Assembly: GCA_946965045.2 (NCBI GenBank)
Contig: OX337228.1
Coordinates: 2,356,001 to 2,420,000 of the forward strand
From: Epithemia pelagica
Taxonomy: Eukaryota > Protista > Bacillariophyta
Reading direction: 5' to 3'
Length of the DNA stretch: 64,000 nucleotides
Within the stretch, counting starts at the first letter, position 1. Every line of letters starts with the position of its first letter. A program made the translations under genes and the position numbers. Positions 14,509 to 26,999 of this stretch are shown here, piece by piece. The notes beneath the pieces are model-generated. The model searched no databases, was not told the DNA's origin, and saw only the letters and a list, made by a program, of their open reading frames with translations.

Positions 14509-17256
14509 TCAGTCGTCTTCATCCTCGTCTTCTTCTTCATCCAAGGCATCTGCTCGTTTGCTCCCATAAACCTTGTCCCATTCCTCGTACTGGACCAAGT
14601 CATCCGGTGACACACTTGGTTTCATTCCGCGAAGAGAGGAACGAAAGTCTTTGAACGAAATGGCCGGGAGATCTTGAGCGTTTACGTTTTCTAAGTTTTG
14701 GTCAGAGGGCAAACTACGTAACGGTCCCATTGCTGCGTCTTCACAAAGGGCTTTGAGATCGGCACCAGAGAATCTTTCTGTTTTCTTGGCCAGTTTTTCC
14801 ATCTCTTGATCAGTCAAGCTATGTGTGTTCTTCCGTAGCATGACTTGCAGAAGGCGGAGTCGATCCGCTTGATTTGGAAGAGGAATGTAAAGGCGTTTGA
14901 CAAAGCGACGACGGGCGGCTTCATCCAGTTCTTGCGGCCGATTGGTGCAACCAATCGTCAGAACACGGCCCTGACCAGACGTCCCAGTCCCGTCCATTTG
15001 GACAAGGAACTCTGTCTTGATTCGTCGACTGGCTTCGTTCTCATCTGATTTTCGCTGTGTCAACAGAGAATCAATCTCGTCAATAAAGACAACAGCGGGT
15101 TCACGATAGGCTGCCACCGCGAACATGGTCCGCACAAGCTTTTCCCCTTCACCAATCCATTTGCTGGTGAGTGAGGAACTTGATATCGAAAAGAAAGTGG
15201 CTCCACTTTCGTGGGCAATGGCTTTTCCAATGAGCGTTTTGCCAGTTCCTGGCGGACCATAAAGCAAAAGTGCATTGGGACCACGACGCAAGCCGGTGAA
15301 AAGATCAGGGCGCTTCATAGGCCAGCAAATGACTTCTTGAATGGTCTGCTTGGCATCATCAAGACCAGCAATGTCCTCAAAGGTTGTGGGATCTCCCCCG
15401 TACATGATTTCACTTTCAATTTTCTCCACCAAATCTTTCCCGAACCGCTTTAGTTCTTCAGGAAGATCGTCGTCTTCATCATTGTTTTCATCGGACTGTT
15501 TCTGTTTCTGTTGCGATGTTGCCTTGTTGACGACTGCGGAAGGTTTCTTTCCACCTTGTTTGTTTCCTGCCGGAGGATTGCTGTTGGTCACTTCGGCACA
15601 TGGCTGAACCCGTTTCGGCGGCTGGAACTTGCGCTTGAGAGAGTCGCGAATGACAAAGTTTTCTGGTGCGGCAGACGCTTCGTCATGTGGAGGAGGTTGT
15701 TGCGGTGGAACCATCACACGCTGAGCATTATTATGGTGATGAAAGGCTGGTGGTGTGGGATATTGCTGTATTTGATGTTGTTGGTGTTGTGGGTATCGTT
15801 GGTATGGGTTTGCATGTTCTGTTTTCTTGTTCTTACTCCCATGGGCCGCAGCATCGACCTCAAAGGCAGTCTGAAAAGGATTCAAGCTATTGTGAAGGTC
15901 ATCCCAGGCCGAAGGTCCAGGAGGATTGGATTGCGTCACTGCAGGTCCCGGAGCCGTTGGTGGAGGATACCGCTTTGCAGCAGCATAGGGGTTTCGAACC
16001 GGTGGTGCTGGGGGAGGTGGTGGAGGAGCCTGTGCATGTTGTGGGTTCGAGAAGGAACGCTGTAGTGGTGGTGGTGGTTGTGACTGTGGTATAGTTTTCC
16101 GTGGCGGGGCATGATGATGGTTGGAGGAGGAGACGAAGGGGGCCACTGCATGGGCGACGGCATGCGGGTCGTTTGATCCATTGTGTCCAACAACGCTCAT
16201 GGTGATTGAACCAGTGGCAGTGCTCTCAGGGGTGGTGGGGACAAAGACCAAATCCGGAGGAACAGCTGTTGTTAGGTTGGTTTTGTGAACCTCCATCGAA
16301 GTGTCTGGGACGTCCAATCTCGTTCCGCGTGCTGCACCAGGGTTATGCTGCGATTTGTTGCGATTGCTTTCAGAGTCTCGTTTTTCCGGTTGAGTTATTG
16401 TTGGATGATTGTCCTGTTGCGTTCCATCAGGACGTTTGTGGGACGTTTTGGTTTTACGCTTCTTCTTCTTCTTGGTACTTCGCCGACGGTGGTGTTTCTT
16501 TCGCGAGAAATGCTCTTGAGCACGAGTATTGTCCCGTGATGGCAGCGACGAGGAAGACGAAGTTGTCGTCGATGATTCTGAAGAAGAGGACGAGCTTGAC
16601 TGGTCGCTGCGAGAGCGTACAAACTCTGGATATTCCGCAAAAAAATCATCGACATCGACAAAATATTCATTTTCTGTATCATCTCCATGGTTTTGATCGG
16701 GACTCGCCGAATCATTGCTGTGAGAAGGAGCATTTTGTGGAGCGCCTGTTTGCTCACTTTGAAAGGCATCCAAAAGGTCACTGCTCCTATGATCCATTTC
16801 CACGTGCATTTGATTCATCAACTCAGTTAGATCACACGAACTGGTTCTTGCACTGTTTGTTTTATGATCCTTCGCGAACTGTACGAGCTGCAAGAGCTCG
16901 GAATGAGCGGTGATGACCATGGCGGCAGCCTCTGGTGGAGACAAGGAGTCCTGTACGATCGTTTCTTGTCGACGATCATCCTCACTGCTATCATCGCCAG
17001 AGCTGTCAAAGTCATCCACTATTATACGGATATCCTCGTCACCATCATCGTCGTCGTCCTCGTCCACTTCTTCATCCGCAGCCTCGGGATTAGTGGAAGC
17101 AAGTTTCTCTCTCTCCTGTTTCTTGTGCTCCGCCAGACAACGAACCAGGTTTTTCTCGGCGTCTTCAAAATCCAAATATAATTCCTCATATAGGGCCAAA
17201 TACTCGTCTTGACTGAATGAAGTGGGATGGAACTTATTGCGGTTCATGGTCGTCAA
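14509..17256 (-). CDS. FIGNL1: Fidgetin-like AAA+ ATPase
   Basis: DIAGLDDAKQTIQE, LLYGPPGTGKT, SSLTSKWIGEGEKLVR, FIDEIDSLL, TNRPQELDEAARRRFVKRLYIPLP and a Vps4_C-like tail. Confidence 0.88.
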   Translation of the reverse strand: MTTMNRNKFHPTSFSQDEYLALYEELYLDFEDAEKNLVRCLAEHKKQEREKLASTNPEAADEEVDEDDDDDGDEDIRIIVDDFDSSGDDSSEDDRRQETIVQDSLSPPEAAAMVITAHSELLQLVQFAKDHKTNSARTSSCDLTELMNQMHVEMDHRSSDLLDAFQSEQTGAPQNAPSHSNDSASPDQNHGDDTENEYFVDVDDFFAEYPEFVRSRSDQSSSSSSSESSTTTSSSSSLPSRDNTRAQEHFSRKKHHRRRSTKKKKKRKTKTSHKRPDGTQQDNHPTITQPEKRDSESNRNKSQHNPGAARGTRLDVPDTSMEVHKTNLTTAVPPDLVFVPTTPESTATGSITMSVVGHNGSNDPHAVAHAVAPFVSSSNHHHAPPRKTIPQSQPPPPLQRSFSNPQHAQAPPPPPPAPPVRNPYAAAKRYPPPTAPGPAVTQSNPPGPSAWDDLHNSLNPFQTAFEVDAAAHGSKNKKTEHANPYQRYPQHQQHQIQQYPTPPAFHHHNNAQRVMVPPQQPPPHDEASAAPENFVIRDSLKRKFQPPKRVQPCAEVTNSNPPAGNKQGGKKPSAVVNKATSQQKQKQSDENNDEDDDLPEELKRFGKDLVEKIESEIMYGGDPTTFEDIAGLDDAKQTIQEVICWPMKRPDLFTGLRRGPNALLLYGPPGTGKTLIGKAIAHESGATFFSISSSSLTSKWIGEGEKLVRTMFAVAAYREPAVVFIDEIDSLLTQRKSDENEASRRIKTEFLVQMDGTGTSGQGRVLTIGCTNRPQELDEAARRRFVKRLYIPLPNQADRLRLLQVMLRKNTHSLTDQEMEKLAKKTERFSGADLKALCEDAAMGPLRSLPSDQNLENVNAQDLPAISFKDFRSSLRGMKPSVSPDDLVQYEEWDKVYGSKRADALDEEEDEDEDD

Positions 17257-17388
17257 GTCGTTCGCTCCAAAGATGAGATGGCATGTCTTGTCATTGTCGG
17301 TCTATTTGAGATTTTTGGGCGCGAATTTTTGAAATTCAAATTCTGAGACAAAGTGCATTGGTCGCACTTTAAAGTGTGCGCAACCCAC

Positions 17389-17408
17389 CAATCACCACAC
17401 CACAACCA
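17389..17408 (+). repeat. Left target-site duplication of the retrotransposon
   Basis: Exact direct repeat of 25733..25752. Confidence 0.95.
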
Positions 17409-17558
17409 TATAATTTCGTGGACAGACGAAATTGAAAGGCGTAGTGCCTCGTGTTATCTGTCCGATAGTTTCTGGTTTCTCGTAGTTTACCGCGAAAGTT
17501 TTTCCCAGAAAGTAATCTGAAACGCATTCAGGTCACCGGCGACCGAACCACGTCGACC

Positions 17559-19586
17559 ATGGCGGATCCCCCCCGTTCGGACTATGACTCTCCTATGGCT
17601 GAAGCCCAACAAGACGACAACACTAATTATGCTGCAAATAACAATAATGATACCAATAATCAAGATGATGCGAGCGACGCCGCCACTGCAGTTACAGCAG
17701 TATACCGCCCTATCCCCTACGAAGGTGACGAAAAAGAGTATACGATCAAGTTTGTGTTCAGTCCGGATGACGATACGAACAAGAGTATCGCCTTGCTCCA
17801 CTATGATATTCTCTATTCTATCTCACAAGTATTTCCAGAGGTAAAAATTTTTGATAATAAAGGTGCAAAACTTAACAGGAAAAAGTTGGAGTCCTTCAAG
17901 GCAGTCTCAGTTTACCTACGACACTTCGACTTACACTACTCCAAGGGCAACGAAAAGAAACAGAGGAAACCGATGTACATTGTAATTCACCGATTCCAGT
18001 CAAAAATTTCAATAAGTGAGATCCGCCGCCACGAATCAGTGCATGAGAAGCTATTGTTAGGGAAGGCAAAAATGACGCAACATCTTTGGAACGAGAACGA
18101 AACACGAATTTCCAACTTGGGATTCTTCGTCGGTTTTGACCCCAGTAATATTCCTCCGGACGAAATGATTGAAGATGTTGTACAAGAAATTATCAAGAAA
18201 ACGAATAAACCGAGGAAGAAAATTCCGAAGTTCAAGTGTAATTACTCTTCGCCCTTCTTCAAGAACGGAGATGACACCTTCAAAACAAAAGCATTTGACT
18301 TGCAGTGTCGCCAACACGACGCTAAAGAATTGCTGGAACTTCTTCAGAAGACATACGTTGAAGACCCGAAGTTCATCTTTCACAAGTTCCGACACACAAA
18401 CAAGTACTTGTACAGCTCCTCTATGATTGAACAAAATGCATACCTGAGAGAGAGCAAGATTTTACCGGTTGCAGGAATTCACCCGAGCGTAATGTGGAGT
18501 TTGAAAGACAGGATTGCACGTGATTATGAAGGAGTCATCAGGATTACCGGCCATAAAGATACGGATCGTATTGGTCGCCACAACATTCATACCACAGAAG
18601 AACACTTTGATGTACTCAGGAGCGCTCTTAGAATGAGTCTGCCAACATTGGTTATGCTCGAAAAAGATGCACGAAACCTACATCATCTTAAAGGTTACGA
18701 CGATCCTCCAAGGCTCGCATTTCGACACGAAAGCTACGGACGACAAGGCACAGGAGAAGACGACGATGACTCAACGGACCACGGTGGTTCTTATGCAACT
18801 TACGTCTCTGCGCTAAATTCTTTGTACACCACCAGAGAGAATGAGTTTCAAGATGACTCAAACAACAGTTATTCACGTCCTCCGAAGATGATTGGACCAA
18901 CAACACAGGTATGGAAGACTATGGCACCCGTCCAAACCGTCGTCGCATCAACAACTACCGAGACAACTACGAGTCAGGTAACCAACGAAGAATACGAACG
19001 AATGAAGAATGAGAATGCTGAATTGAAGAGCGAGTTACGGGAACTGAAAGATGCTTTCAAGTCTTTTGTATCGAAACAAGAAGAAGAAAGTGAATCGAGA
19101 CAAGAGAAGATGATGCGTTCAATGATGCAGGCGATGCAGCAACAAATGTCCGCTATGATGATGCAGCAGAATTATATGCCTCCTCCAAACTACGCTCACC
19201 CTTACCAACAACAACCACAATTTGGTATGAGCCCCATCAACGCTCAACAGCTGCAACAGTTACCCAACAACTTGTTCCCAGCTCATCAGACTACTCCTGT
19301 TTCCGATCATTGCTTACCACCAAATCAGATGCCACTCCCACAGACCCCAACAAACCACCAGATGCCAACAAACCACAACTACCAGAATCATCCCCAGTAC
19401 AACAACCAATATCAACGCACAGAGCATGATATAACAAATCCAAAAGCACAGAGTCGCAGCGCAAATGATGAGCGCAATCAGGACTCAGAACAACAGGCCG
19501 CATCGCGAATTGATGTGAGCATGGCCCGAGCAAACTCGCCCTTGCACGCGGACGAGTCCTTGGCCGACTCAAGCATGCAGAAATGA
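17559..19586 (+). CDS. Retrotransposon ORF1 protein (675 aa)
   Basis: First ORF inside the TSD-bounded element, with a coiled-coil (EEYERMKNENAELKSELRELK) and Q/P-rich tail. Its stop overlaps the ORF2 start (ATGA). Confidence 0.85.
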   Translation: MADPPRSDYDSPMAEAQQDDNTNYAANNNNDTNNQDDASDAATAVTAVYRPIPYEGDEKEYTIKFVFSPDDDTNKSIALLHYDILYSISQVFPEVKIFDNKGAKLNRKKLESFKAVSVYLRHFDLHYSKGNEKKQRKPMYIVIHRFQSKISISEIRRHESVHEKLLLGKAKMTQHLWNENETRISNLGFFVGFDPSNIPPDEMIEDVVQEIIKKTNKPRKKIPKFKCNYSSPFFKNGDDTFKTKAFDLQCRQHDAKELLELLQKTYVEDPKFIFHKFRHTNKYLYSSSMIEQNAYLRESKILPVAGIHPSVMWSLKDRIARDYEGVIRITGHKDTDRIGRHNIHTTEEHFDVLRSALRMSLPTLVMLEKDARNLHHLKGYDDPPRLAFRHESYGRQGTGEDDDDSTDHGGSYATYVSALNSLYTTRENEFQDDSNNSYSRPPKMIGPTTQVWKTMAPVQTVVASTTTETTTSQVTNEEYERMKNENAELKSELRELKDAFKSFVSKQEEESESRQEKMMRSMMQAMQQQMSAMMMQQNYMPPPNYAHPYQQQPQFGMSPINAQQLQQLPNNLFPAHQTTPVSDHCLPPNQMPLPQTPTNHQMPTNHNYQNHPQYNNQYQRTEHDITNPKAQSRSANDERNQDSEQQAASRIDVSMARANSPLHADESLADSSMQK

Positions 19587-22500
19587 GTGAGTCACTGAAC
19601 GGTAGACTCGTAACTATAACCAACAATACAAACCTACAACCACATCCTCTTGCACGATTAATACGTGAATTAGACACTTCCGATCAGGATAACCATAACA
19701 ACGACGACGCCGCGAGCGACGACGACCCAATTCCCCAAACTACCGATCAGGATAACCATAACAACGACGATGCCCCGAGCGTCGACGATCGAAACACAAA
19801 CAATATCACAACAACCACATCCACCATCAACACAACTATTCCAGGCACCCAGAACAGCGATGACGCTACGAGTGTCGCCGAAGACCCACAACAAATAGAG
19901 AACGGAATACAAATAGAAAGAGGAGTTCAAGCATATGACTCGGACGAGTTCATTGGTGTTAAAACTCGAGATGTTAAGCCGCCAGACACCTATCGCGTGT
20001 TTGGCTGCAACCCGAACGGCTTTAAAACTTTACTCTCGAGTGGAGGAACTTTTGCGGAATACTGTGAAGAAATGTGCAGGCTGGACGCCGACACATGGTG
20101 CTTCTACGAAACCAACATTGACACCACTCAAGCTCAAGTTCGCAACGTTCTTCACACCACTGTTCAACGTCATTGTGAACACTCTCGTATCACTTTTGGC
20201 AGCACTAATATTCCATCACCGAGACCAACACCTTACAAGCCAGGTGGAACCCTCATCGCTTCACAAGGCAAGTCAACAGGTAGAATCACCACTCAAGGTA
20301 CTGATCGAATGGGCAGGTGGTCATATCAAGTCTTTTCAGGTCGAGGAAACAAAACCATTACGGTCATCTCAGCGTATCAAGTGTGTCGTCAGTCTCTTCT
20401 CACAGAGGAAACGAATCGCGTCCGATCCTTCACTGCCTCGGCCCAACAAATATCAATGCTTCGCCAAGTAAATCGACCCGTCTCCCCGCGAGAAGCGTTT
20501 ATTATTGATTTAACAGATTTCATCAGGCAATGCCGTGCTCGCAACTCGGAAATCTTACTTCTTGGTGATTTTAACGAGGCACTTAACGACAACAATGAAG
20601 GAATGTCCAAATTGTGTTTGGAATCGGAACTTCATGATATTATGGGAGAGCAGATTGGAAACACAACATTCGCAACATATATCAACGGCCGAGAACGAAT
20701 TGACTACGCACTTGGTACTAGCCATGTCGCTGCTGCAGTCACTCGTGCTTGCTACGAGCCTTTTCAACACAGAGACATCCCCAACGACCACAGAAACATG
20801 GTGATTGACTTCGATATTCAAAGACTTTTCGGCAACAGTACTCAACAACTTGGTCCCATCGCGAGTCGAGACTTTACCAGCAAGGACAGGAGCTCGAACA
20901 GACGCTACATTGAACACAAGCACAAGTTCTGTGTGCAGCACAGTTTCGCACAACGCTTAGAATCGCTCAAACAAAACTGGAATCCATGTTTGGCAGAACG
21001 ACTCGACAAAGACTTTCAACGGGCAGGAGAACACGCTAGTCGCAAATGCATAAAGAAACCACGAAGCATTCCCTTTGTTAAACAACTGGCAAGTCTCAGG
21101 AGCCGTAAGAATCTTCTTCTGAAACTCATCTCGGCCGAGAAATGGGGCAAATCATTCGAATCCGGAATCGCTTATACTACACGACATCAATCAGTGATCA
21201 ACATTCCCAGCACACTGGAGGCATGCCAACAAGAATGCAGAATAGTACAGCGACAAATACGAGAGATGACAAAAGATGCAGTTCAACGACGCCACAACGC
21301 ATTACAAACAGAATTGCAGCAAGCACTTGCAGAAGGCAACAAACAACAATCAAAAGCGCTCAAACATAGAATCGCGGCTGAACGTACCAAGGCCATGTAT
21401 ACTAAATTGAGACAATGTCGCGGGAACTTGAAAACAGGCATCACTCGATTAGATGTCCCAGCTGATCCAACCACTACAGACTACACAGGCTGCACTGAAT
21501 GGATCACTATTGATACACCGGCAGAAATAGAAGAAAGACTGTTAACGAGAAACCAACGTCATTTGGGTCAAGCTCACAACACATTCCCAACCAAACCGCC
21601 CTTCTCCGAATGGTGCGATTGGGGGGCATCTACCCACACAGCCGAGCTCATCCTAGAAGGCAACTGGCAAAGCGACGAACTCGACGACATGCAACAATCG
21701 TTGATCGACCACATGAAAGCACGCGTGACTCTTGACGCTATTCCTGCTCCAATCACGACCGAAGAATGGATCGGGAAGATTAAATCGTGGCCGGAATCCA
21801 CCACAACTTCTCCTTCTGGCTTTCATCTGGGCCATAGCAAAGCCTTGGTAGCTCCTCATGATCTGGACACTTCTACCGACGACGGACAAGAACTAGAGGG
21901 AAAACGTGAACAACTAATTGAATGGCAAGTCGGTCTGCTCAACTGTGCTTTATCCAACAAATACTCGTTCGACAGATGGAAGCACATCGTCAATGTAATG
22001 ATTTTGAAAGAGCCAAATAATCTGAAGATCCATCGTCTTCGTGTGATACACCTTTACGAGCAAGACTACAATCTGGTCTTAGCCATTAAGTGGAGACAAA
22101 TGATCCAACTAAACACCAATCAACGAACTCTACATCCTATGCAATTCGGAGGAGTTCCAGGCAAAGACGCAGTTATACCAACGCTTTGTGAAGAACTACA
22201 ATACGAAATTTCCCGAGCTAGTAAGCGTCCTCTAGTCCATTTGGACTACGACGCCACTGCTTGCTACGATCGGATTGTGCTATCCTTTGGGAGTCTTGCG
22301 TCACGCAGTTTCGGACAGAATAGATCTATTGTCTTCATCAACGCCACCACCTTGGAAGAAGCAAAGTACTATTTGAAGACAAAGCTCGGCGTCTCCGAAA
22401 GACACTACCAACATTGTCAACTGTACCCAATTTACGGATCCGGTCAAGGAGCCGGCAACTCTCCTGCGATTTGGTGTGTAATTTCTACTATTCTTTTCGA

Positions 22501-25500
22501 CACCTACGAAGACAAGGCTCATGGAGCTATTTTCAGCAGTCCCGATGGTTCAGTTACGACAGCCCTCCATATGATTGGATTTGTGGATGATACAAGCGGC
22601 AGCGTGAATGACTTTCTCCGAGAACAACCTGCTACACCAGATTACTATATTGCAAAGGCACAAGAGGATGCACAGCGATGGAACAATCTACTTAGTTTGT
22701 CAGGTGGAGCCCTCAATGTGGAGAAATGCTCTTATCATTTCATGCACTACACCTTCAATGTGGACGGACTAGCCTCTTTACAATCAGGCACCTTTGGCCC
22801 CCAAATTTCAATTCAATTTCACGGTTCCGAGCAAAATACACCCATCAAACAACTTTCTTCGTATCGCAGTCACAAAACTTTGGGAGTCCAGAAATCCCCT
22901 CACTGCACAGACAAGGGACTCTTTCTCGCTCTGGCAAAAAAGAACCGAGCACACACCTCCGTTATGGCTACGAGTCCCTTCTCGCGAACCGACGCATGGG
23001 CTTATTACCATGCCATATACTTACCCAGTATTTGCTACCCAATGCCCTCATCTACCTTGTCGGACGCACATTGCGACGCGCTTCAAGTTCAATTCAAGAA
23101 AGCTTTCCTTCCAAAATATGGCTTCAATCGGCATATGCCTAATGCAGTAGTCTACGGTCCTAACGAACTTGGTGGAATTGGCTTAAGAACGTTATCCGTT
23201 GAACGAGGCATCTCGCAAACATACCTATTGTTGGCGTGTCTTCGATCTCCAGGAGTCCCCGCAAAGCTCGCTAACATTGCCATCTCATGGGCACAGTTCT
23301 TAGCTGGCACAAGTGTGTCGATTTTCGAAGACGTCACCACTTCACTTCCTCATCTCGCGCCAATGCAATGGATCCCACAGGTACGCAAGTTTCTCCACTC
23401 TACAAGCTGCCAGATTGAACTAGAGACCAAATTTCTCCCCCCTTTACAACGCGACAACGACCGCTATCTGATGGATATTGTACTCGAGTCACAAATCTTT
23501 ACCAAGGCCGAACTTTTGCTGGTGAATGCATGCCGCATATACATGGGTGTCACTCTCCTAAGTGATATTACTACTCCCGACGGCACTAAACTTTCCAAGT
23601 TTGTGCTCGAACACCGACAGGACACCTTCTCTACTCACAACGGACTTCTGCCTTACCAAGAACTACCTGGACCTCGCGCTTGGACTCAATGGAACAAGAT
23701 GCTTAACCTTATCCGGGAACCAGGAGAACAACATCTGTCTATTCCACCACTCGGACACTGGATAGTTCATGGACACGAGACATACCGCCGTTGGTTTTAC
23801 TTCGTTGATTGCCAGAGTTCCACTTTATTCGTCGCTAACGGCGACAACTCTTTTCGCCATTACTGGTACCAGCATCCTTTCTTCTTACCCACATCTCAAG
23901 TCTCCCCACGACCACCGTCAACATCTGTTCCTGTTCATGTTGCTCAGTCCGGACCGGCCCTTGTCTTGTCACCATGTCGCCCCCAACTCATTCCGCAGAG
24001 TCCGCCTCCTCCGCAAAGCTTCTCCGCTTACGTCCAAACTCTGAAACAATGGGATCAGCATCTTCTCGCCAAAGTAGACCTTATCCAAACCGTGGAAGCA
24101 ATACAACAATACTTTCAGTCCTCGACAGTTCGTCTTTTTCTCTGCAGTGATGGCTCCGCCGCTTTGTTCAGAGGAAAATTTGGTTGTATCTGTAGTACTG
24201 ATACTGGACAACGGCTTTTCAAACTACATGGACCTGCACCAGGATTCCGCACCTCGTCGTTTCGCTCTGAAAGCTACGGAATGCTTGCTCTCTTCCGGAC
24301 CGTACTACATCTTACTACCCATTACCGACTGAGTTTTCCCCCCCACTGCATTTTCTACACCGACTCTCAGAGTTTGATCAAGACAGTGGAGAAACGATTA
24401 GAGTGGACATACGACTTCCCGTATTCCACCATGGAAGCTGATTGGGATATCCAACAATCGATTACTACTTCCTTACAGCAATTTCCTGAGATTCCCCAAT
24501 TTCTTCACGTCAGAGGACACCAAGACCGTTTTCATGCATACTCTACGTTACCTCTTACCGCTCAGCTGAATGTCGACGCAGACCGCCTGGCCAATTTGTA
24601 CGACTATCCTCCTGATATTTCTCCGCTCCGAGTTCCGTTGATTACTGGTTGTTGTGCTTTACTTCACACCCCTCAAGGTACAGTCAATTCCAATTATCGG
24701 ACGACCTTGCGCTATTTAGCAACTTGGCAACCGCTGCGACACTATCTTTGCAATAAGCATGACTGGGATATCGATACTTTTGAGTCTGTGGATTGGACTT
24801 CTCACGGCCGTGCTCTCCGAGCCTCTTTCCATCGCCGCCAATTTCATATCAAGTTTCTTCATGACTGGCTCCCCCTCGGCTACCTTCGATCCCGTTACGC
24901 TGTGTATTACTCTGACTCTTGCCCGCTATGCACTCCACCTGTTATCGAGACGCGTACCCACTTTCTCCGCTGTCCACATCGCCCTTGGAAAGGTCCCCTC
25001 TTCGACGATCTTGAAAAATTTTGGCGCCTCCAATATCTAGACCCCTTCCTCCGATTATTGTTGGTGGAAATCCTACAGTCATGGCTTGGCAATGTCTCAC
25101 CGACGTTTCCTACTCTTTCCCCATCATACCAACTTCTGATTACTCAACAACGTCGAATCGGATTAGATCAACTTTTCTTTGGACGCTTTTCTACTCAATG
25201 GCAAGTTCTTCAAGACTCGTATCTCTCCTCAACAAACCAGAAATCTCGTTCGGTATCGGGCTCCCACTTTGTCACTGGTTCTATAAAGGTTCTATGGACA
25301 CATGTCCACGCCCTCTGGCTCAAGCGGAACCATAATCTACACGGTGATACCCCACAAACTATCGAAGCTGCGTCCTACGCTCAAGCCCAACGCGAAGTTA
25401 TTGCTCTTTACGAGTACCGCCACCAACTTCCCCCCTCTGACCGGGACATCTTCTATTCCTCTACCACCGCCCATTTCGAGGCGGAAACGACTGCATTCTC

Positions 25501-25561
25501 ACTCCGCTCTTGGATCAACACCTGGCGTCCTGTTATTCTCAGGACTGCTCCACTCTCTTAA
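19583..25561 (+). CDS. Retrotransposon ORF2: APE endonuclease, reverse transcriptase, RNase H, C-terminal Cys/His finger (1992 aa)
   Basis: APE: FGCNPNG, FYETN, LLGDFNE, IDYALG, DHRNMVIDF. RT: RLRVIHLYEQDYN, LDYDATACYDRI, GSGQGAGNSP, GFVDD. RNase H: LCSDGS, RSESYG, YTDSQSL, HVRGHQD, NVDADRLA. Finger: CPLC...ETRTHFLRC. Confidence 0.96.
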   Translation: MSESLNGRLVTITNNTNLQPHPLARLIRELDTSDQDNHNNDDAASDDDPIPQTTDQDNHNNDDAPSVDDRNTNNITTTTSTINTTIPGTQNSDDATSVAEDPQQIENGIQIERGVQAYDSDEFIGVKTRDVKPPDTYRVFGCNPNGFKTLLSSGGTFAEYCEEMCRLDADTWCFYETNIDTTQAQVRNVLHTTVQRHCEHSRITFGSTNIPSPRPTPYKPGGTLIASQGKSTGRITTQGTDRMGRWSYQVFSGRGNKTITVISAYQVCRQSLLTEETNRVRSFTASAQQISMLRQVNRPVSPREAFIIDLTDFIRQCRARNSEILLLGDFNEALNDNNEGMSKLCLESELHDIMGEQIGNTTFATYINGRERIDYALGTSHVAAAVTRACYEPFQHRDIPNDHRNMVIDFDIQRLFGNSTQQLGPIASRDFTSKDRSSNRRYIEHKHKFCVQHSFAQRLESLKQNWNPCLAERLDKDFQRAGEHASRKCIKKPRSIPFVKQLASLRSRKNLLLKLISAEKWGKSFESGIAYTTRHQSVINIPSTLEACQQECRIVQRQIREMTKDAVQRRHNALQTELQQALAEGNKQQSKALKHRIAAERTKAMYTKLRQCRGNLKTGITRLDVPADPTTTDYTGCTEWITIDTPAEIEERLLTRNQRHLGQAHNTFPTKPPFSEWCDWGASTHTAELILEGNWQSDELDDMQQSLIDHMKARVTLDAIPAPITTEEWIGKIKSWPESTTTSPSGFHLGHSKALVAPHDLDTSTDDGQELEGKREQLIEWQVGLLNCALSNKYSFDRWKHIVNVMILKEPNNLKIHRLRVIHLYEQDYNLVLAIKWRQMIQLNTNQRTLHPMQFGGVPGKDAVIPTLCEELQYEISRASKRPLVHLDYDATACYDRIVLSFGSLASRSFGQNRSIVFINATTLEEAKYYLKTKLGVSERHYQHCQLYPIYGSGQGAGNSPAIWCVISTILFDTYEDKAHGAIFSSPDGSVTTALHMIGFVDDTSGSVNDFLREQPATPDYYIAKAQEDAQRWNNLLSLSGGALNVEKCSYHFMHYTFNVDGLASLQSGTFGPQISIQFHGSEQNTPIKQLSSYRSHKTLGVQKSPHCTDKGLFLALAKKNRAHTSVMATSPFSRTDAWAYYHAIYLPSICYPMPSSTLSDAHCDALQVQFKKAFLPKYGFNRHMPNAVVYGPNELGGIGLRTLSVERGISQTYLLLACLRSPGVPAKLANIAISWAQFLAGTSVSIFEDVTTSLPHLAPMQWIPQVRKFLHSTSCQIELETKFLPPLQRDNDRYLMDIVLESQIFTKAELLLVNACRIYMGVTLLSDITTPDGTKLSKFVLEHRQDTFSTHNGLLPYQELPGPRAWTQWNKMLNLIREPGEQHLSIPPLGHWIVHGHETYRRWFYFVDCQSSTLFVANGDNSFRHYWYQHPFFLPTSQVSPRPPSTSVPVHVAQSGPALVLSPCRPQLIPQSPPPPQSFSAYVQTLKQWDQHLLAKVDLIQTVEAIQQYFQSSTVRLFLCSDGSAALFRGKFGCICSTDTGQRLFKLHGPAPGFRTSSFRSESYGMLALFRTVLHLTTHYRLSFPPHCIFYTDSQSLIKTVEKRLEWTYDFPYSTMEADWDIQQSITTSLQQFPEIPQFLHVRGHQDRFHAYSTLPLTAQLNVDADRLANLYDYPPDISPLRVPLITGCCALLHTPQGTVNSNYRTTLRYLATWQPLRHYLCNKHDWDIDTFESVDWTSHGRALRASFHRRQFHIKFLHDWLPLGYLRSRYAVYYSDSCPLCTPPVIETRTHFLRCPHRPWKGPLFDDLEKFWRLQYLDPFLRLLLVEILQSWLGNVSPTFPTLSPSYQLLITQQRRIGLDQLFFGRFSTQWQVLQDSYLSSTNQKSRSVSGSHFVTGSIKVLWTHVHALWLKRNHNLHGDTPQTIEAASYAQAQREVIALYEYRHQLPPSDRDIFYSSTTAHFEAETTAFSLRSWINTWRPVILRTAPLS

Positions 25562-25698
25562 CCGACTTTCTTCTTTCACCCACCAGTACTCCCAGTTCCA
25601 TTCCTTGTTTAGTCCTCGCTTCACATCTTGTGTGGAGCCGGGCGCGTCGGTCGACGCTACCCTAGCGGGTGCGCGCGGCAGCGTTAAAATAGATTGTG

Positions 25699-25732
<34 letters not shown>

Positions 25733-25752
25733 CAATCACCACACCACAACCA
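25733..25752 (+). repeat. Right target-site duplication of the retrotransposon
   Basis: Exact direct repeat of 17389..17408, immediately after T32. Confidence 0.95.
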
Positions 25753-25785
25753 ATAGAACTCATAAGTGATAGACCGACGACCATC

Positions 25786-26751
25786 ATGTCGCGACCTGAG
25801 TTGACCGGACATGCCTCTTTGTTTTACAATGAGAAAGAGGCCCGGAAATACGATTCTTCATCGCGTATGATTGGAGTCCAAAGAGAGATTACCGACCGAG
25901 CGATTGAATTGTTGAGATTGAATGATAGCACCCCGAGCCTGGTACTCGACATTGGATGTGGGAGTGGGTTATCTGGCAAAGTTCTTGAAGAACGAGGGCA
26001 TGTCTGGGTAGGATGCGATGTTTCTCGTGACATGTTGACTGTAGCCAAAGAACGTATGGACAATCAAGAACAAGTCTCTCGGAATCCCAAAGCAAAAGAA
26101 TCGGACGACGACGTTGAACTGGCAGACTCGCACGACGAAGACGAGGACACCAAATGTTCCACGGGCGATTTACTACATCACGATATGGGAACGGGACTTC
26201 CTTTTCGACCGGCAACGTTTGATGCATGCATTTCAATCTCGGCATTGCAATGGCTATGTTATTCCAACTCGGCCCACCAGAATCCCAAGAGACGTTTGAC
26301 TCGGTTCTTTTCGTCCTTGTACACAGTGTTGAAACGCGGAGGTCGTGCCGTACTACAGTTTTATCCAGAGACCGCCGAACAAGCCGTATTAATAAGCGAA
26401 ACGGCGACTCGGGTTGGTTTCACTGGCGGTGTTGTTGTCGATTATCCCAACTCGGCAAAGGCAAAGAAACACTATCTTGTTCTTGGCTTTGAACGAAATA
26501 ATCAAGCTAGAAAGAAAGCACTTTCGGAAAGCGCATCCAACAAAAGCGGTCATAACAATGGGCACGTGACCGTTGGTGGCATGGAAGCCCAAAATAGGAA
26601 TGGAAAGAAGCAACCACCGCCTCGAAAGAAAAAGGGAGGGACGAAAACAAAGGAATGGATTCTTCATAAGAAGGAAATGCAAAGGCGGAAAGGAAAAGAT
26701 GTTCGGGCCGATACGAAATACACTGCGCGGAGACGACCGACAAAGTTTTGA
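25786..26751 (+). CDS. BUD23: 18S rRNA m7G methyltransferase BUD23/WBSCR22
   Basis: MSRPE...FYNEKEARKYDSSSRMIGVQ, LDIGCGSGLSG, DMGTGLPFRPATFDACISISALQWLC, GGVVVDYPNSAKAKKHYLVL, KYTARRR. True ATG at 25786. Confidence 0.96.
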   Translation: MSRPELTGHASLFYNEKEARKYDSSSRMIGVQREITDRAIELLRLNDSTPSLVLDIGCGSGLSGKVLEERGHVWVGCDVSRDMLTVAKERMDNQEQVSRNPKAKESDDDVELADSHDEDEDTKCSTGDLLHHDMGTGLPFRPATFDACISISALQWLCYSNSAHQNPKRRLTRFFSSLYTVLKRGGRAVLQFYPETAEQAVLISETATRVGFTGGVVVDYPNSAKAKKHYLVLGFERNNQARKKALSESASNKSGHNNGHVTVGGMEAQNRNGKKQPPPRKKKGGTKTKEWILHKKEMQRRKGKDVRADTKYTARRRPTKF

Positions 26752-26999
26752 GGGGGTAGAATACTTCATAACAGTGAACAAAGCGTATATATTGAACAGA
26801 CTACAATTTCTGTAACTTAGTCTCTGCAATCGGCCATATCAACCCAAACACAACTAGGCAAACACAAAAAAATCTCTCTCTTGGGTGTGTTTTAGAATGA
26901 TCCAAAACCACGGAAGGATTGTTAAACGACGTGTTCCACTCTAGAGAGGAAGATAAGGAGCAGTTCATTGTGAGCGTAGACCAACGAAAATCCAAAAAG

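Follow-up and report, generated by a model that had tools for sequence, protein, structure and literature searches.

An intact LINE of the diatom Epithemia pelagica whose sense strand ends in oligo(T), a tail shared across its clade

Long interspersed elements (LINEs) usually end in poly(A) or in short tandem repeats, and the poly(A) tail of L1 is added post-transcriptionally by poly(A) polymerase. Tails of the (T)n kind are given in Table 2 of PMC3747384 only for plant short interspersed elements (SINEs; Au, p-SINE1-3 and ZmSINE1/2), whose sole identified partner is LINE1-1_ZM, a LINE of the L1 clade; in plants, members of that clade nearly always have a poly(A) end, and the partners listed for the T-tailed SINEs include no autonomous LINE that has a (T)n tail itself (PMC3747384). 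In human cells, 3' uridines abolish L1 retrotransposition and L1 ORF2p needs an oligo(A) primer to copy an RNA with a U tail (PMC6191937). Here we describe an intact LINE whose sense strand closes with a run of 32 T, found in a 64,000-nt window (the whole stretch of DNA analysed) of the diatom Epithemia pelagica (assembly GCA_946965045.2, contig OX337228.1, positions 2,356,001 to 2,420,000 of the forward strand). Like the T-tailed plant SINEs it is a retroposed element with (T)n at the 3' end of its sense strand, but those are short RNA polymerase III (Pol III) transcripts in which the T run doubles as terminator, whereas the diatom tail sits on an autonomous element of 8 kb. No LINE with a T or U tail is described in the full-text literature searched, a coverage outside which lie the Repbase Reports (Ambal, diatom LINEs); Ambal is a Repbase clade name that was added later than the 2009 classification. 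The parts of the window copy are the following:

17389..17408, + strand: 5' copy of the 20-bp target-site duplication (TSD), CAATCACCACACCACAACCA
17409..25732, + strand: full-length LINE with two open reading frames (ORFs), 8324 bp including the T tail, delimited by sequence anatomy and TSD pairing
17559..19586, + strand: ORF1, 675 aa
19583..25561, + strand: ORF2, 1992 aa, overlapping ORF1
25701..25732, + strand: oligo(T) tail, an uninterrupted T32 that closes the 3' untranslated region (UTR)
25733..25752, + strand: 3' copy of the 20-bp TSD, CAATCACCACACCACAACCA, exact and directly behind the T run

An earlier note, made from the letters of the window, had put both ORFs on the + strand, T32 at 25701..25732 and a perfect 20-bp TSD around the element, all of which is correct to the base. 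It had also called the LINE intact, and so it is, with two ORFs, endonuclease and reverse transcriptase (RT) domains and a full length flanked by TSDs. The 5' end of the element, TATAATTTCGTGG, is common to the window copy and nine other full-length copies, and the sequence running up to the tail reads ...UAGAUUGUGUC. Ahead of the 5' TSD copy the flank reads ...CCCAC, with no T there, so the T run belongs to the insertion and not to the target. The length of 32 was read from the assembly; Logan contigs (four runs, of unknown kind) covering 24300-26800 break at the T run and yield neither a junction nor an empty allele nor RNA ends.

Copies were sought with the last 433 nt of the element in the window's own 60.5-Mb assembly, which gave 44 matches. 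Every readable copy has the motif CCCTAGCGGGTGCGCGCGGCAGCGTTAAAATAGAYTGT(GTC/ACC), then a T run, then unrelated flank, with tails from T6 to T32 (median 9) over 32 copies; one further copy, L026, has almost no tail. Members of the window's subfamily are 97-99% identical to it over the 3'-terminal ~400 nt and carry T9, T16 and T10, and the T end is also found in subfamilies just 71-77% identical. Exact TSDs of 14-19 bp flank nine more full-length copies (5' and 3' ends paired), and three very short copies (62, 95 and 96 bp) have one of 16 bp each. A second assembly of the species (ERZ21939226) holds two more full-length copies with 16-bp TSDs and one truncated copy of 6375 bp (6.4 kb); L034 from this assembly is the same insertion as L021. 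Beyond the window copy, 15 insertions in this species thus have exact TSDs, 14 of them of 14-19 bp and one of 9 bp. Relatives in NCBI assemblies of Epithemia (T9, 11-bp TSD) and Fragilaria (T14, 15-bp TSD) bring the insertions with exact TSDs to 18 overall, ranging from 9 to 20 bp. Metagenomic and Logan relatives (L048, L051, L060 and L063) have T7, T5GT6, T7 and T9 among them, behind the same motif. A metagenome scan with the ORF2 C-terminus gave five loci, the 3' end being reached only by L051, and L061 and L062 were left out of the counts as ambiguous, with T5 behind a different motif.

All the other copies end in a T run after the same 3' motif, which is far beyond chance and excludes an assembly artefact at a single locus. 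The further copies for which the earlier note had asked have T tails, with exact TSDs where the ends were paired. Two ways in which the note thought it might fail, copies that end in poly(A) and a T run that is an artefact or a feature of the target, are both excluded; the tail is present also in the second assembly, in Epithemia and in Fragilaria. Its view of the T tract as the element's own 3' terminus agrees with the 5' flank without T and with the 18 insertions that have a tail plus TSD. A neighbouring poly(A) element in inverted orientation is rejected by the tail and TSD of these 18 independent insertions, and a T run pre-existing in the target by the same insertions together with the 5' flank. 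The oligo(T) tail is a heritable, clade-wide trait, with relatives in at least six other diatom lineages, and the window element is an intact, young (recently inserted) member of this diatom LINE clade. The 5'-truncated copies (62, 95, 96 and 6375 bp) all retain the T end, so DNA synthesis starts there on the sense-strand template, as in target-primed reverse transcription (TPRT). The whole footprint is that of TPRT, namely TSDs of variable length, 5' truncation, a 3' end that is kept and no long terminal repeats.

Just ahead of the tail lies a conserved 3' module, which in the window copy comprises:

25618..25638, + strand: 3' UTR hairpin 1, from the minimum free energy (MFE) fold, with covarying pairs CG/UA
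25644..25684, + strand: conserved 3' stem-loop, in which the invariant GUCG (25650-25653) pairs with CGGC (25676-25679)
25685..25693, + strand: conserved single-stranded motif TAAAATAGA, 7 nt ahead of the tail

The stem-loop is followed by UAAAAUAGA, which is single-stranded, then by 7-9 nt of spacer and finally by the tail. The motif TAAAATAGA is kept in Epithemia, Fragilaria, L048 and L060 and is replaced by a variant in L063 and L051. Nine aligned lineages share two invariant blocks, GGTCGA and GCGGCAG, which pair with each other (GUCG:CGGC), and compensatory double changes are seen in eight of the 14 stem pairs; examples among the pairs flanking the core are CG in five lineages and UA in four; GC in seven and AU in two; UA in four, GC in three and CG in two; or GC in five, CG in two, UA in one and AU in one. 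The lineages that share this structure have ORF2 proteins only 33-47% identical to the window's full-length ORF2. The 3' structure is therefore conserved far above the rest of the element, with compensatory changes, by which the family is of the "stringent" LINE type, with an RT predicted from these alignments to recognise its own 3' end. The MFE fold also has a weak terminal hairpin (25685-25705), formed between the conserved AAAA of UAAAAUAGA and the U residues with which the tail begins; any functional role for it would be speculative.

Known stringent LINEs (eel UnaL2 of the L2 clade, and maize LINE1-1_ZM with ZmSINE2; PMC3747384) are alike in their 3'-terminal hairpin, compensatory changes and conserved flanking nucleotides, as well as in a short repeat tail of variable length, 5'-truncated copies and TSDs of the TPRT type. 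They differ in the tail itself, which is (TGTAA)n in UnaL2 and reported as poly(A) in plant L1s including LINE1-1_ZM (PMC3747384), whereas it is homopolymeric T in the diatom family. A further difference is the diatom ORF2, of ~2000 aa, which has an RNase H and an RT too divergent for a sequence match to solved RTs.

About one third of the genome matches (L025-L030 and about 10 more) are mini-copies of only ~95 nt. All begin within a few bases of the foot of 3' UTR hairpin 1, two have exact 16-bp TSDs, and no shared SINE head was seen upstream of them. A site at which the RT tends to stop, or a separate short template, may account for them.

The proteins place the family among LINEs with an apurinic/apyrimidinic-type endonuclease (APE). 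ORF2 has the domain order APE, RT, RNase H and CCHC zinc knuckle, located as follows:

20000..20812, + strand: APE-type endonuclease, ~aa 140-410 (PF03372 match; invariant catalytic D/N/E/DH columns)
21800..22912, + strand: reverse transcriptase, ~aa 740-1110, motif C being FVDD at aa 1000-1003 (invariant motif columns)
24125..24973, + strand: RNase H, ~aa 1515-1675, and CCHC knuckle, aa 1780-1797 (alignment consensus)

The PF03372 match scores 24.4 bits on the whole of ORF2, just below the 24.5-bit cut-off, and 26.6 bits, above it, on the N-terminal 500 aa. The RVT_1 match is weak in the window ORF2, reaches the cut-off in the homologue P0053 and is sub-threshold in P0081. The RNase H consensus reads DGS...SYRAE...TDS...HVKGHQD...NVDAD and that of the knuckle CPxC..H..C, with zf-RVT matches in homologues. 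ORF2 homologues are numerous (31-86% identity), those named being from the diatoms Epithemia clementina and Fragilaria crotonensis, plus an MMETSP transcript. ORF1, without a Pfam match, consists of a conserved core (~aa 50-390), a coiled coil and a Q/P-rich tail. The core (window 17706-18730) gave a confident AlphaFold2 prediction (pLDDT 82, pTM 0.74) of tandem beta-alpha-beta-beta-alpha-beta units, with weak structural matches to Cas6, ACT, raver1 RNA recognition motifs (RRMs) and Prp24. With low confidence, the predicted fold suggests that the core may consist of RNA-binding domains of the ferredoxin or RRM-like type.

With an N-terminal APE followed by an RT in ORF2, the element is an APE-type LINE. 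Neither the single ORF2 RT sequence nor a 15-sequence profile matched the sequence of any solved RT, which puts the clade far from both L1 and R2. It falls outside the L1 clade, having no sequence match to solved L1 ORF2p even by profile, an oligo(T) tail and a different ORF1 layout, in which several ferredoxin-like folds precede the coiled coil, not the order coiled coil, RRM and C-terminal domain of L1 ORF1. The sole L1-like trait of the family is the zf-RVT matches in homologues. Human LINE-1 is alike in being an APE-type LINE with two ORFs and in its homopolymer tail, which varies in length and is longest in young copies, and its primer end is likewise complementary to the tail (TTTT/A in L1, dA in the diatom family); it differs in the opposite tail base, relaxed 3' recognition and lack of an RNase H, and a distant target word is found in the diatom family only (see below). 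R2 and other site-specific LINEs are alike in recognising a structured 3' UTR, in tolerating priming without complementarity and in targeting directed by sequence. R2 has a restriction-like endonuclease and one site in the rDNA, whereas the diatom family has an APE, a short degenerate word and many genomic sites.

Target choice was studied in 17 insertions whose empty sites could be reconstructed. In 14 of them a T directly precedes the annotated TSD (background T 0.26, p = 2e-6). As such a T would merge with the tail, the primer left by the true nick closes in most cases with one to three dA, and C|T is a frequent context. Three insertions, among them the window copy, have no T at the 5' edge of the TSD. 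Pairing of primer and template may thus be favoured without being obligatory, or else the endonuclease may simply prefer the site, as far as the sequences suggest. The earlier note had proposed priming independent of homology, which stands for the window copy, with no T at the nick, and is not supported at the level of the family. Its suggestion of an RNA that ends in oligo(U), either templated or added by a terminal uridylyl transferase, is plausible. A second bias lies further upstream, represented in the window by one feature:

17361..17365, + strand: target word GTCGC (within GGTCGCAC, 17360-17367), starting 28 nt upstream of the TSD

In 10 of the 17 sites, GTCGC (often as GGTCGCAC) or its complement GCGAC has its first base 22-32 nt ahead of the TSD, an enrichment at -32..-22 over a background of 2% (p = 2e-13) for a position range chosen post hoc. 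The observation comes from the window (17360-17367) and from L027, L034, L040-L044 and L047. The GTCGC word is similar to a sequence of the element itself, the invariant GGTCGA of its 3' stem.

Three other loci have junctions of unusual build. At L047/L017 (G000 C11, ~2938260-2946740) three repeats of one 16-17-bp target sequence alternate with two insertions (TSD, full-length copy with T8, TSD, 62-bp copy with T8, TSD), as though a single site had been hit twice in succession, which targeting by an upstream word would be expected to produce. At L043 (G000 C6, ~1093600-1093810) an inverted duplicate of the upstream flank, ~160 nt long (115 nt exact), is found at the 5' junction, between one TSD copy and a second one adjoining the full-length element. 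A further full-length copy is preceded, within ~60 nt of its 5' end, by a second LINE 3' end in opposite orientation (L042, 1324-1444, - strand).

Starting from what was observed (the DNA anatomy, the tail, the TSDs, the T end in truncated copies, the conserved structure and the target bias), we lean towards a model that we regard as probable, if by no means secure, in which the RNA template has a U tract, reverse transcription starts inside it and its length is reset by slippage or uridylation. ORF2p would bind the 3' stem-loop and nick the bottom strand ~28 nt downstream of the GTCGC word, freeing a 3' end that would usually finish in dA. By pairing with between one and three of the U residues, this end would start reverse transcription inside the tract, so that the cDNA would open with oligo(dA) and the sense strand end in oligo(T). 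The U tract would most simply be transcribed by RNA polymerase II (Pol II) from the T run of the source copy, and every cycle would set the tail length anew, through slippage of the RT, a start point that varies or, possibly, a uridylyl transferase. Near-identical copies (97-99% over the 3'-terminal ~400 nt) with T9, T10, T16 and T32 indicate that the tail is regenerated at each cycle and not simply inherited, and T at the nick in 14 of the 17 sites indicates a bottom-strand primer that ends in dA and is able to pair with U. Several points weigh against this model. A U tract at or near the 3' end of the RNA would be a reading taken from DNA alone; pairing is not obligatory, since there is no T at the nick in the window copy and two others; and the excess of T at the nick could be explained by endonuclease preference alone. 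In addition, L031, an MMETSP transcript of a distant relative, continues for ~600 nt past a motif-like site with no T run and so lends the model no support, and the model would need a Pol II transcript to be trimmed down to the U tract. The wider proposal, that a whole clade of autonomous diatom LINEs replicates through an oligo(U)-ended template, with either a uridylyl transferase or RT slippage as the source of the U tail, is one that we hold as possible and tentative.

The tail might also be absent from the RNA, with the RT adding untemplated dA to the target 3'-OH before engaging the RNA at the end of the spacer. The R2 RT does prime without complementarity and add non-templated nucleotides, but at most ~5 nt (PMC4117753), compared with tails of up to 32 (median 9) here. 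Tail lengths unrelated to those of close relatives, and the three of 17 sites that allow no pairing, would suit such a mechanism; the homopolymeric purity of the tails would demand a strict dA bias, and the excess of T at the nick would be left unexplained unless it were pure endonuclease preference. We consider this explanation unlikely. We give slightly less credence to an RNA that ends at the spacer and receives its U tail, later copied into DNA, from a terminal uridylyl transferase, either of the host or co-opted. With T32 in the youngest copy and T9-T16 in its closest relatives, the tails follow a pattern like that of poly(A) tails added de novo, although RT slippage accounts equally well for the variation in length. 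Human cells are known to uridylate LINE RNA, but in them uridylation blocks L1 retrotransposition and does not support it (PMC6191937), and domain searches found no nucleotidyl-transferase domain in ORF1 or ORF2.

A T run could, finally, be a Pol III terminator, the element or its mobile form being a Pol III transcript that ends in UUUU-OH, and (T)n tails are indeed known only from plant SINEs transcribed by Pol III (PMC3747384). The sense strand of the window copy, though, has 27 internal runs (24 of T4 and three of T5), with runs of up to T7 in relatives, and these would terminate Pol III early, which makes Pol III transcription of the LINE unlikely. On this count a SINE-like, Pol III-transcribed retroposon, which should be free of internal runs of T4 or more, is rejected. 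The tails also far exceed the length required of a terminator, and U6 has only four matches in the genome, which gives no support to a bulk retroposition of Pol III RNAs. We therefore hold a Pol III origin of the tail to be highly improbable, and keep to the template with a U tract in which synthesis would begin as our preferred model.

The window copy was inserted into a former divergent intergenic or promoter region of 185 bp. On one side it is bordered by an AAA ATPase gene with a Vps4_C domain (14509-17256, - strand) and on the other by a gene for a Bud23/WBSCR22-like methyltransferase (25786-26751, + strand), in the same orientation as the LINE, whose ATG (25786) is 33 bp beyond the TSD. 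In the public metagenome contig OEIO01001071.1 a Nextera adapter, CTGTCTCTTATACACATCT, occurs ~30 nt beyond the LINE tail (L051, 3123-3141), so this contig is chimeric past that point.

A widespread, active LINE clade whose cDNA starts in oligo(dA) means that TPRT can be built around the opposite tail, and it offers a natural system for the choice of the RT start site, with the stem-loop, the conserved single-stranded motif and the U tract as candidate factors. For annotation, tools that seek poly(A) will mis-orient or miss such elements in diatom genomes. The target bias puts insertions in promoters, in the window 33 bp upstream of the Bud23-like gene. If the oligo(U)-template reading is true, the family would be a mirror image of the poly(A)-dependent L1, and uridylation, an anti-retrotransposon mark in animals, would here be a priming platform. 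SINE RNAs terminated by Pol III could then plug directly into the LINE machinery, and T-tailed SINEs would have in this clade the kind of autonomous partner that has long been missing.

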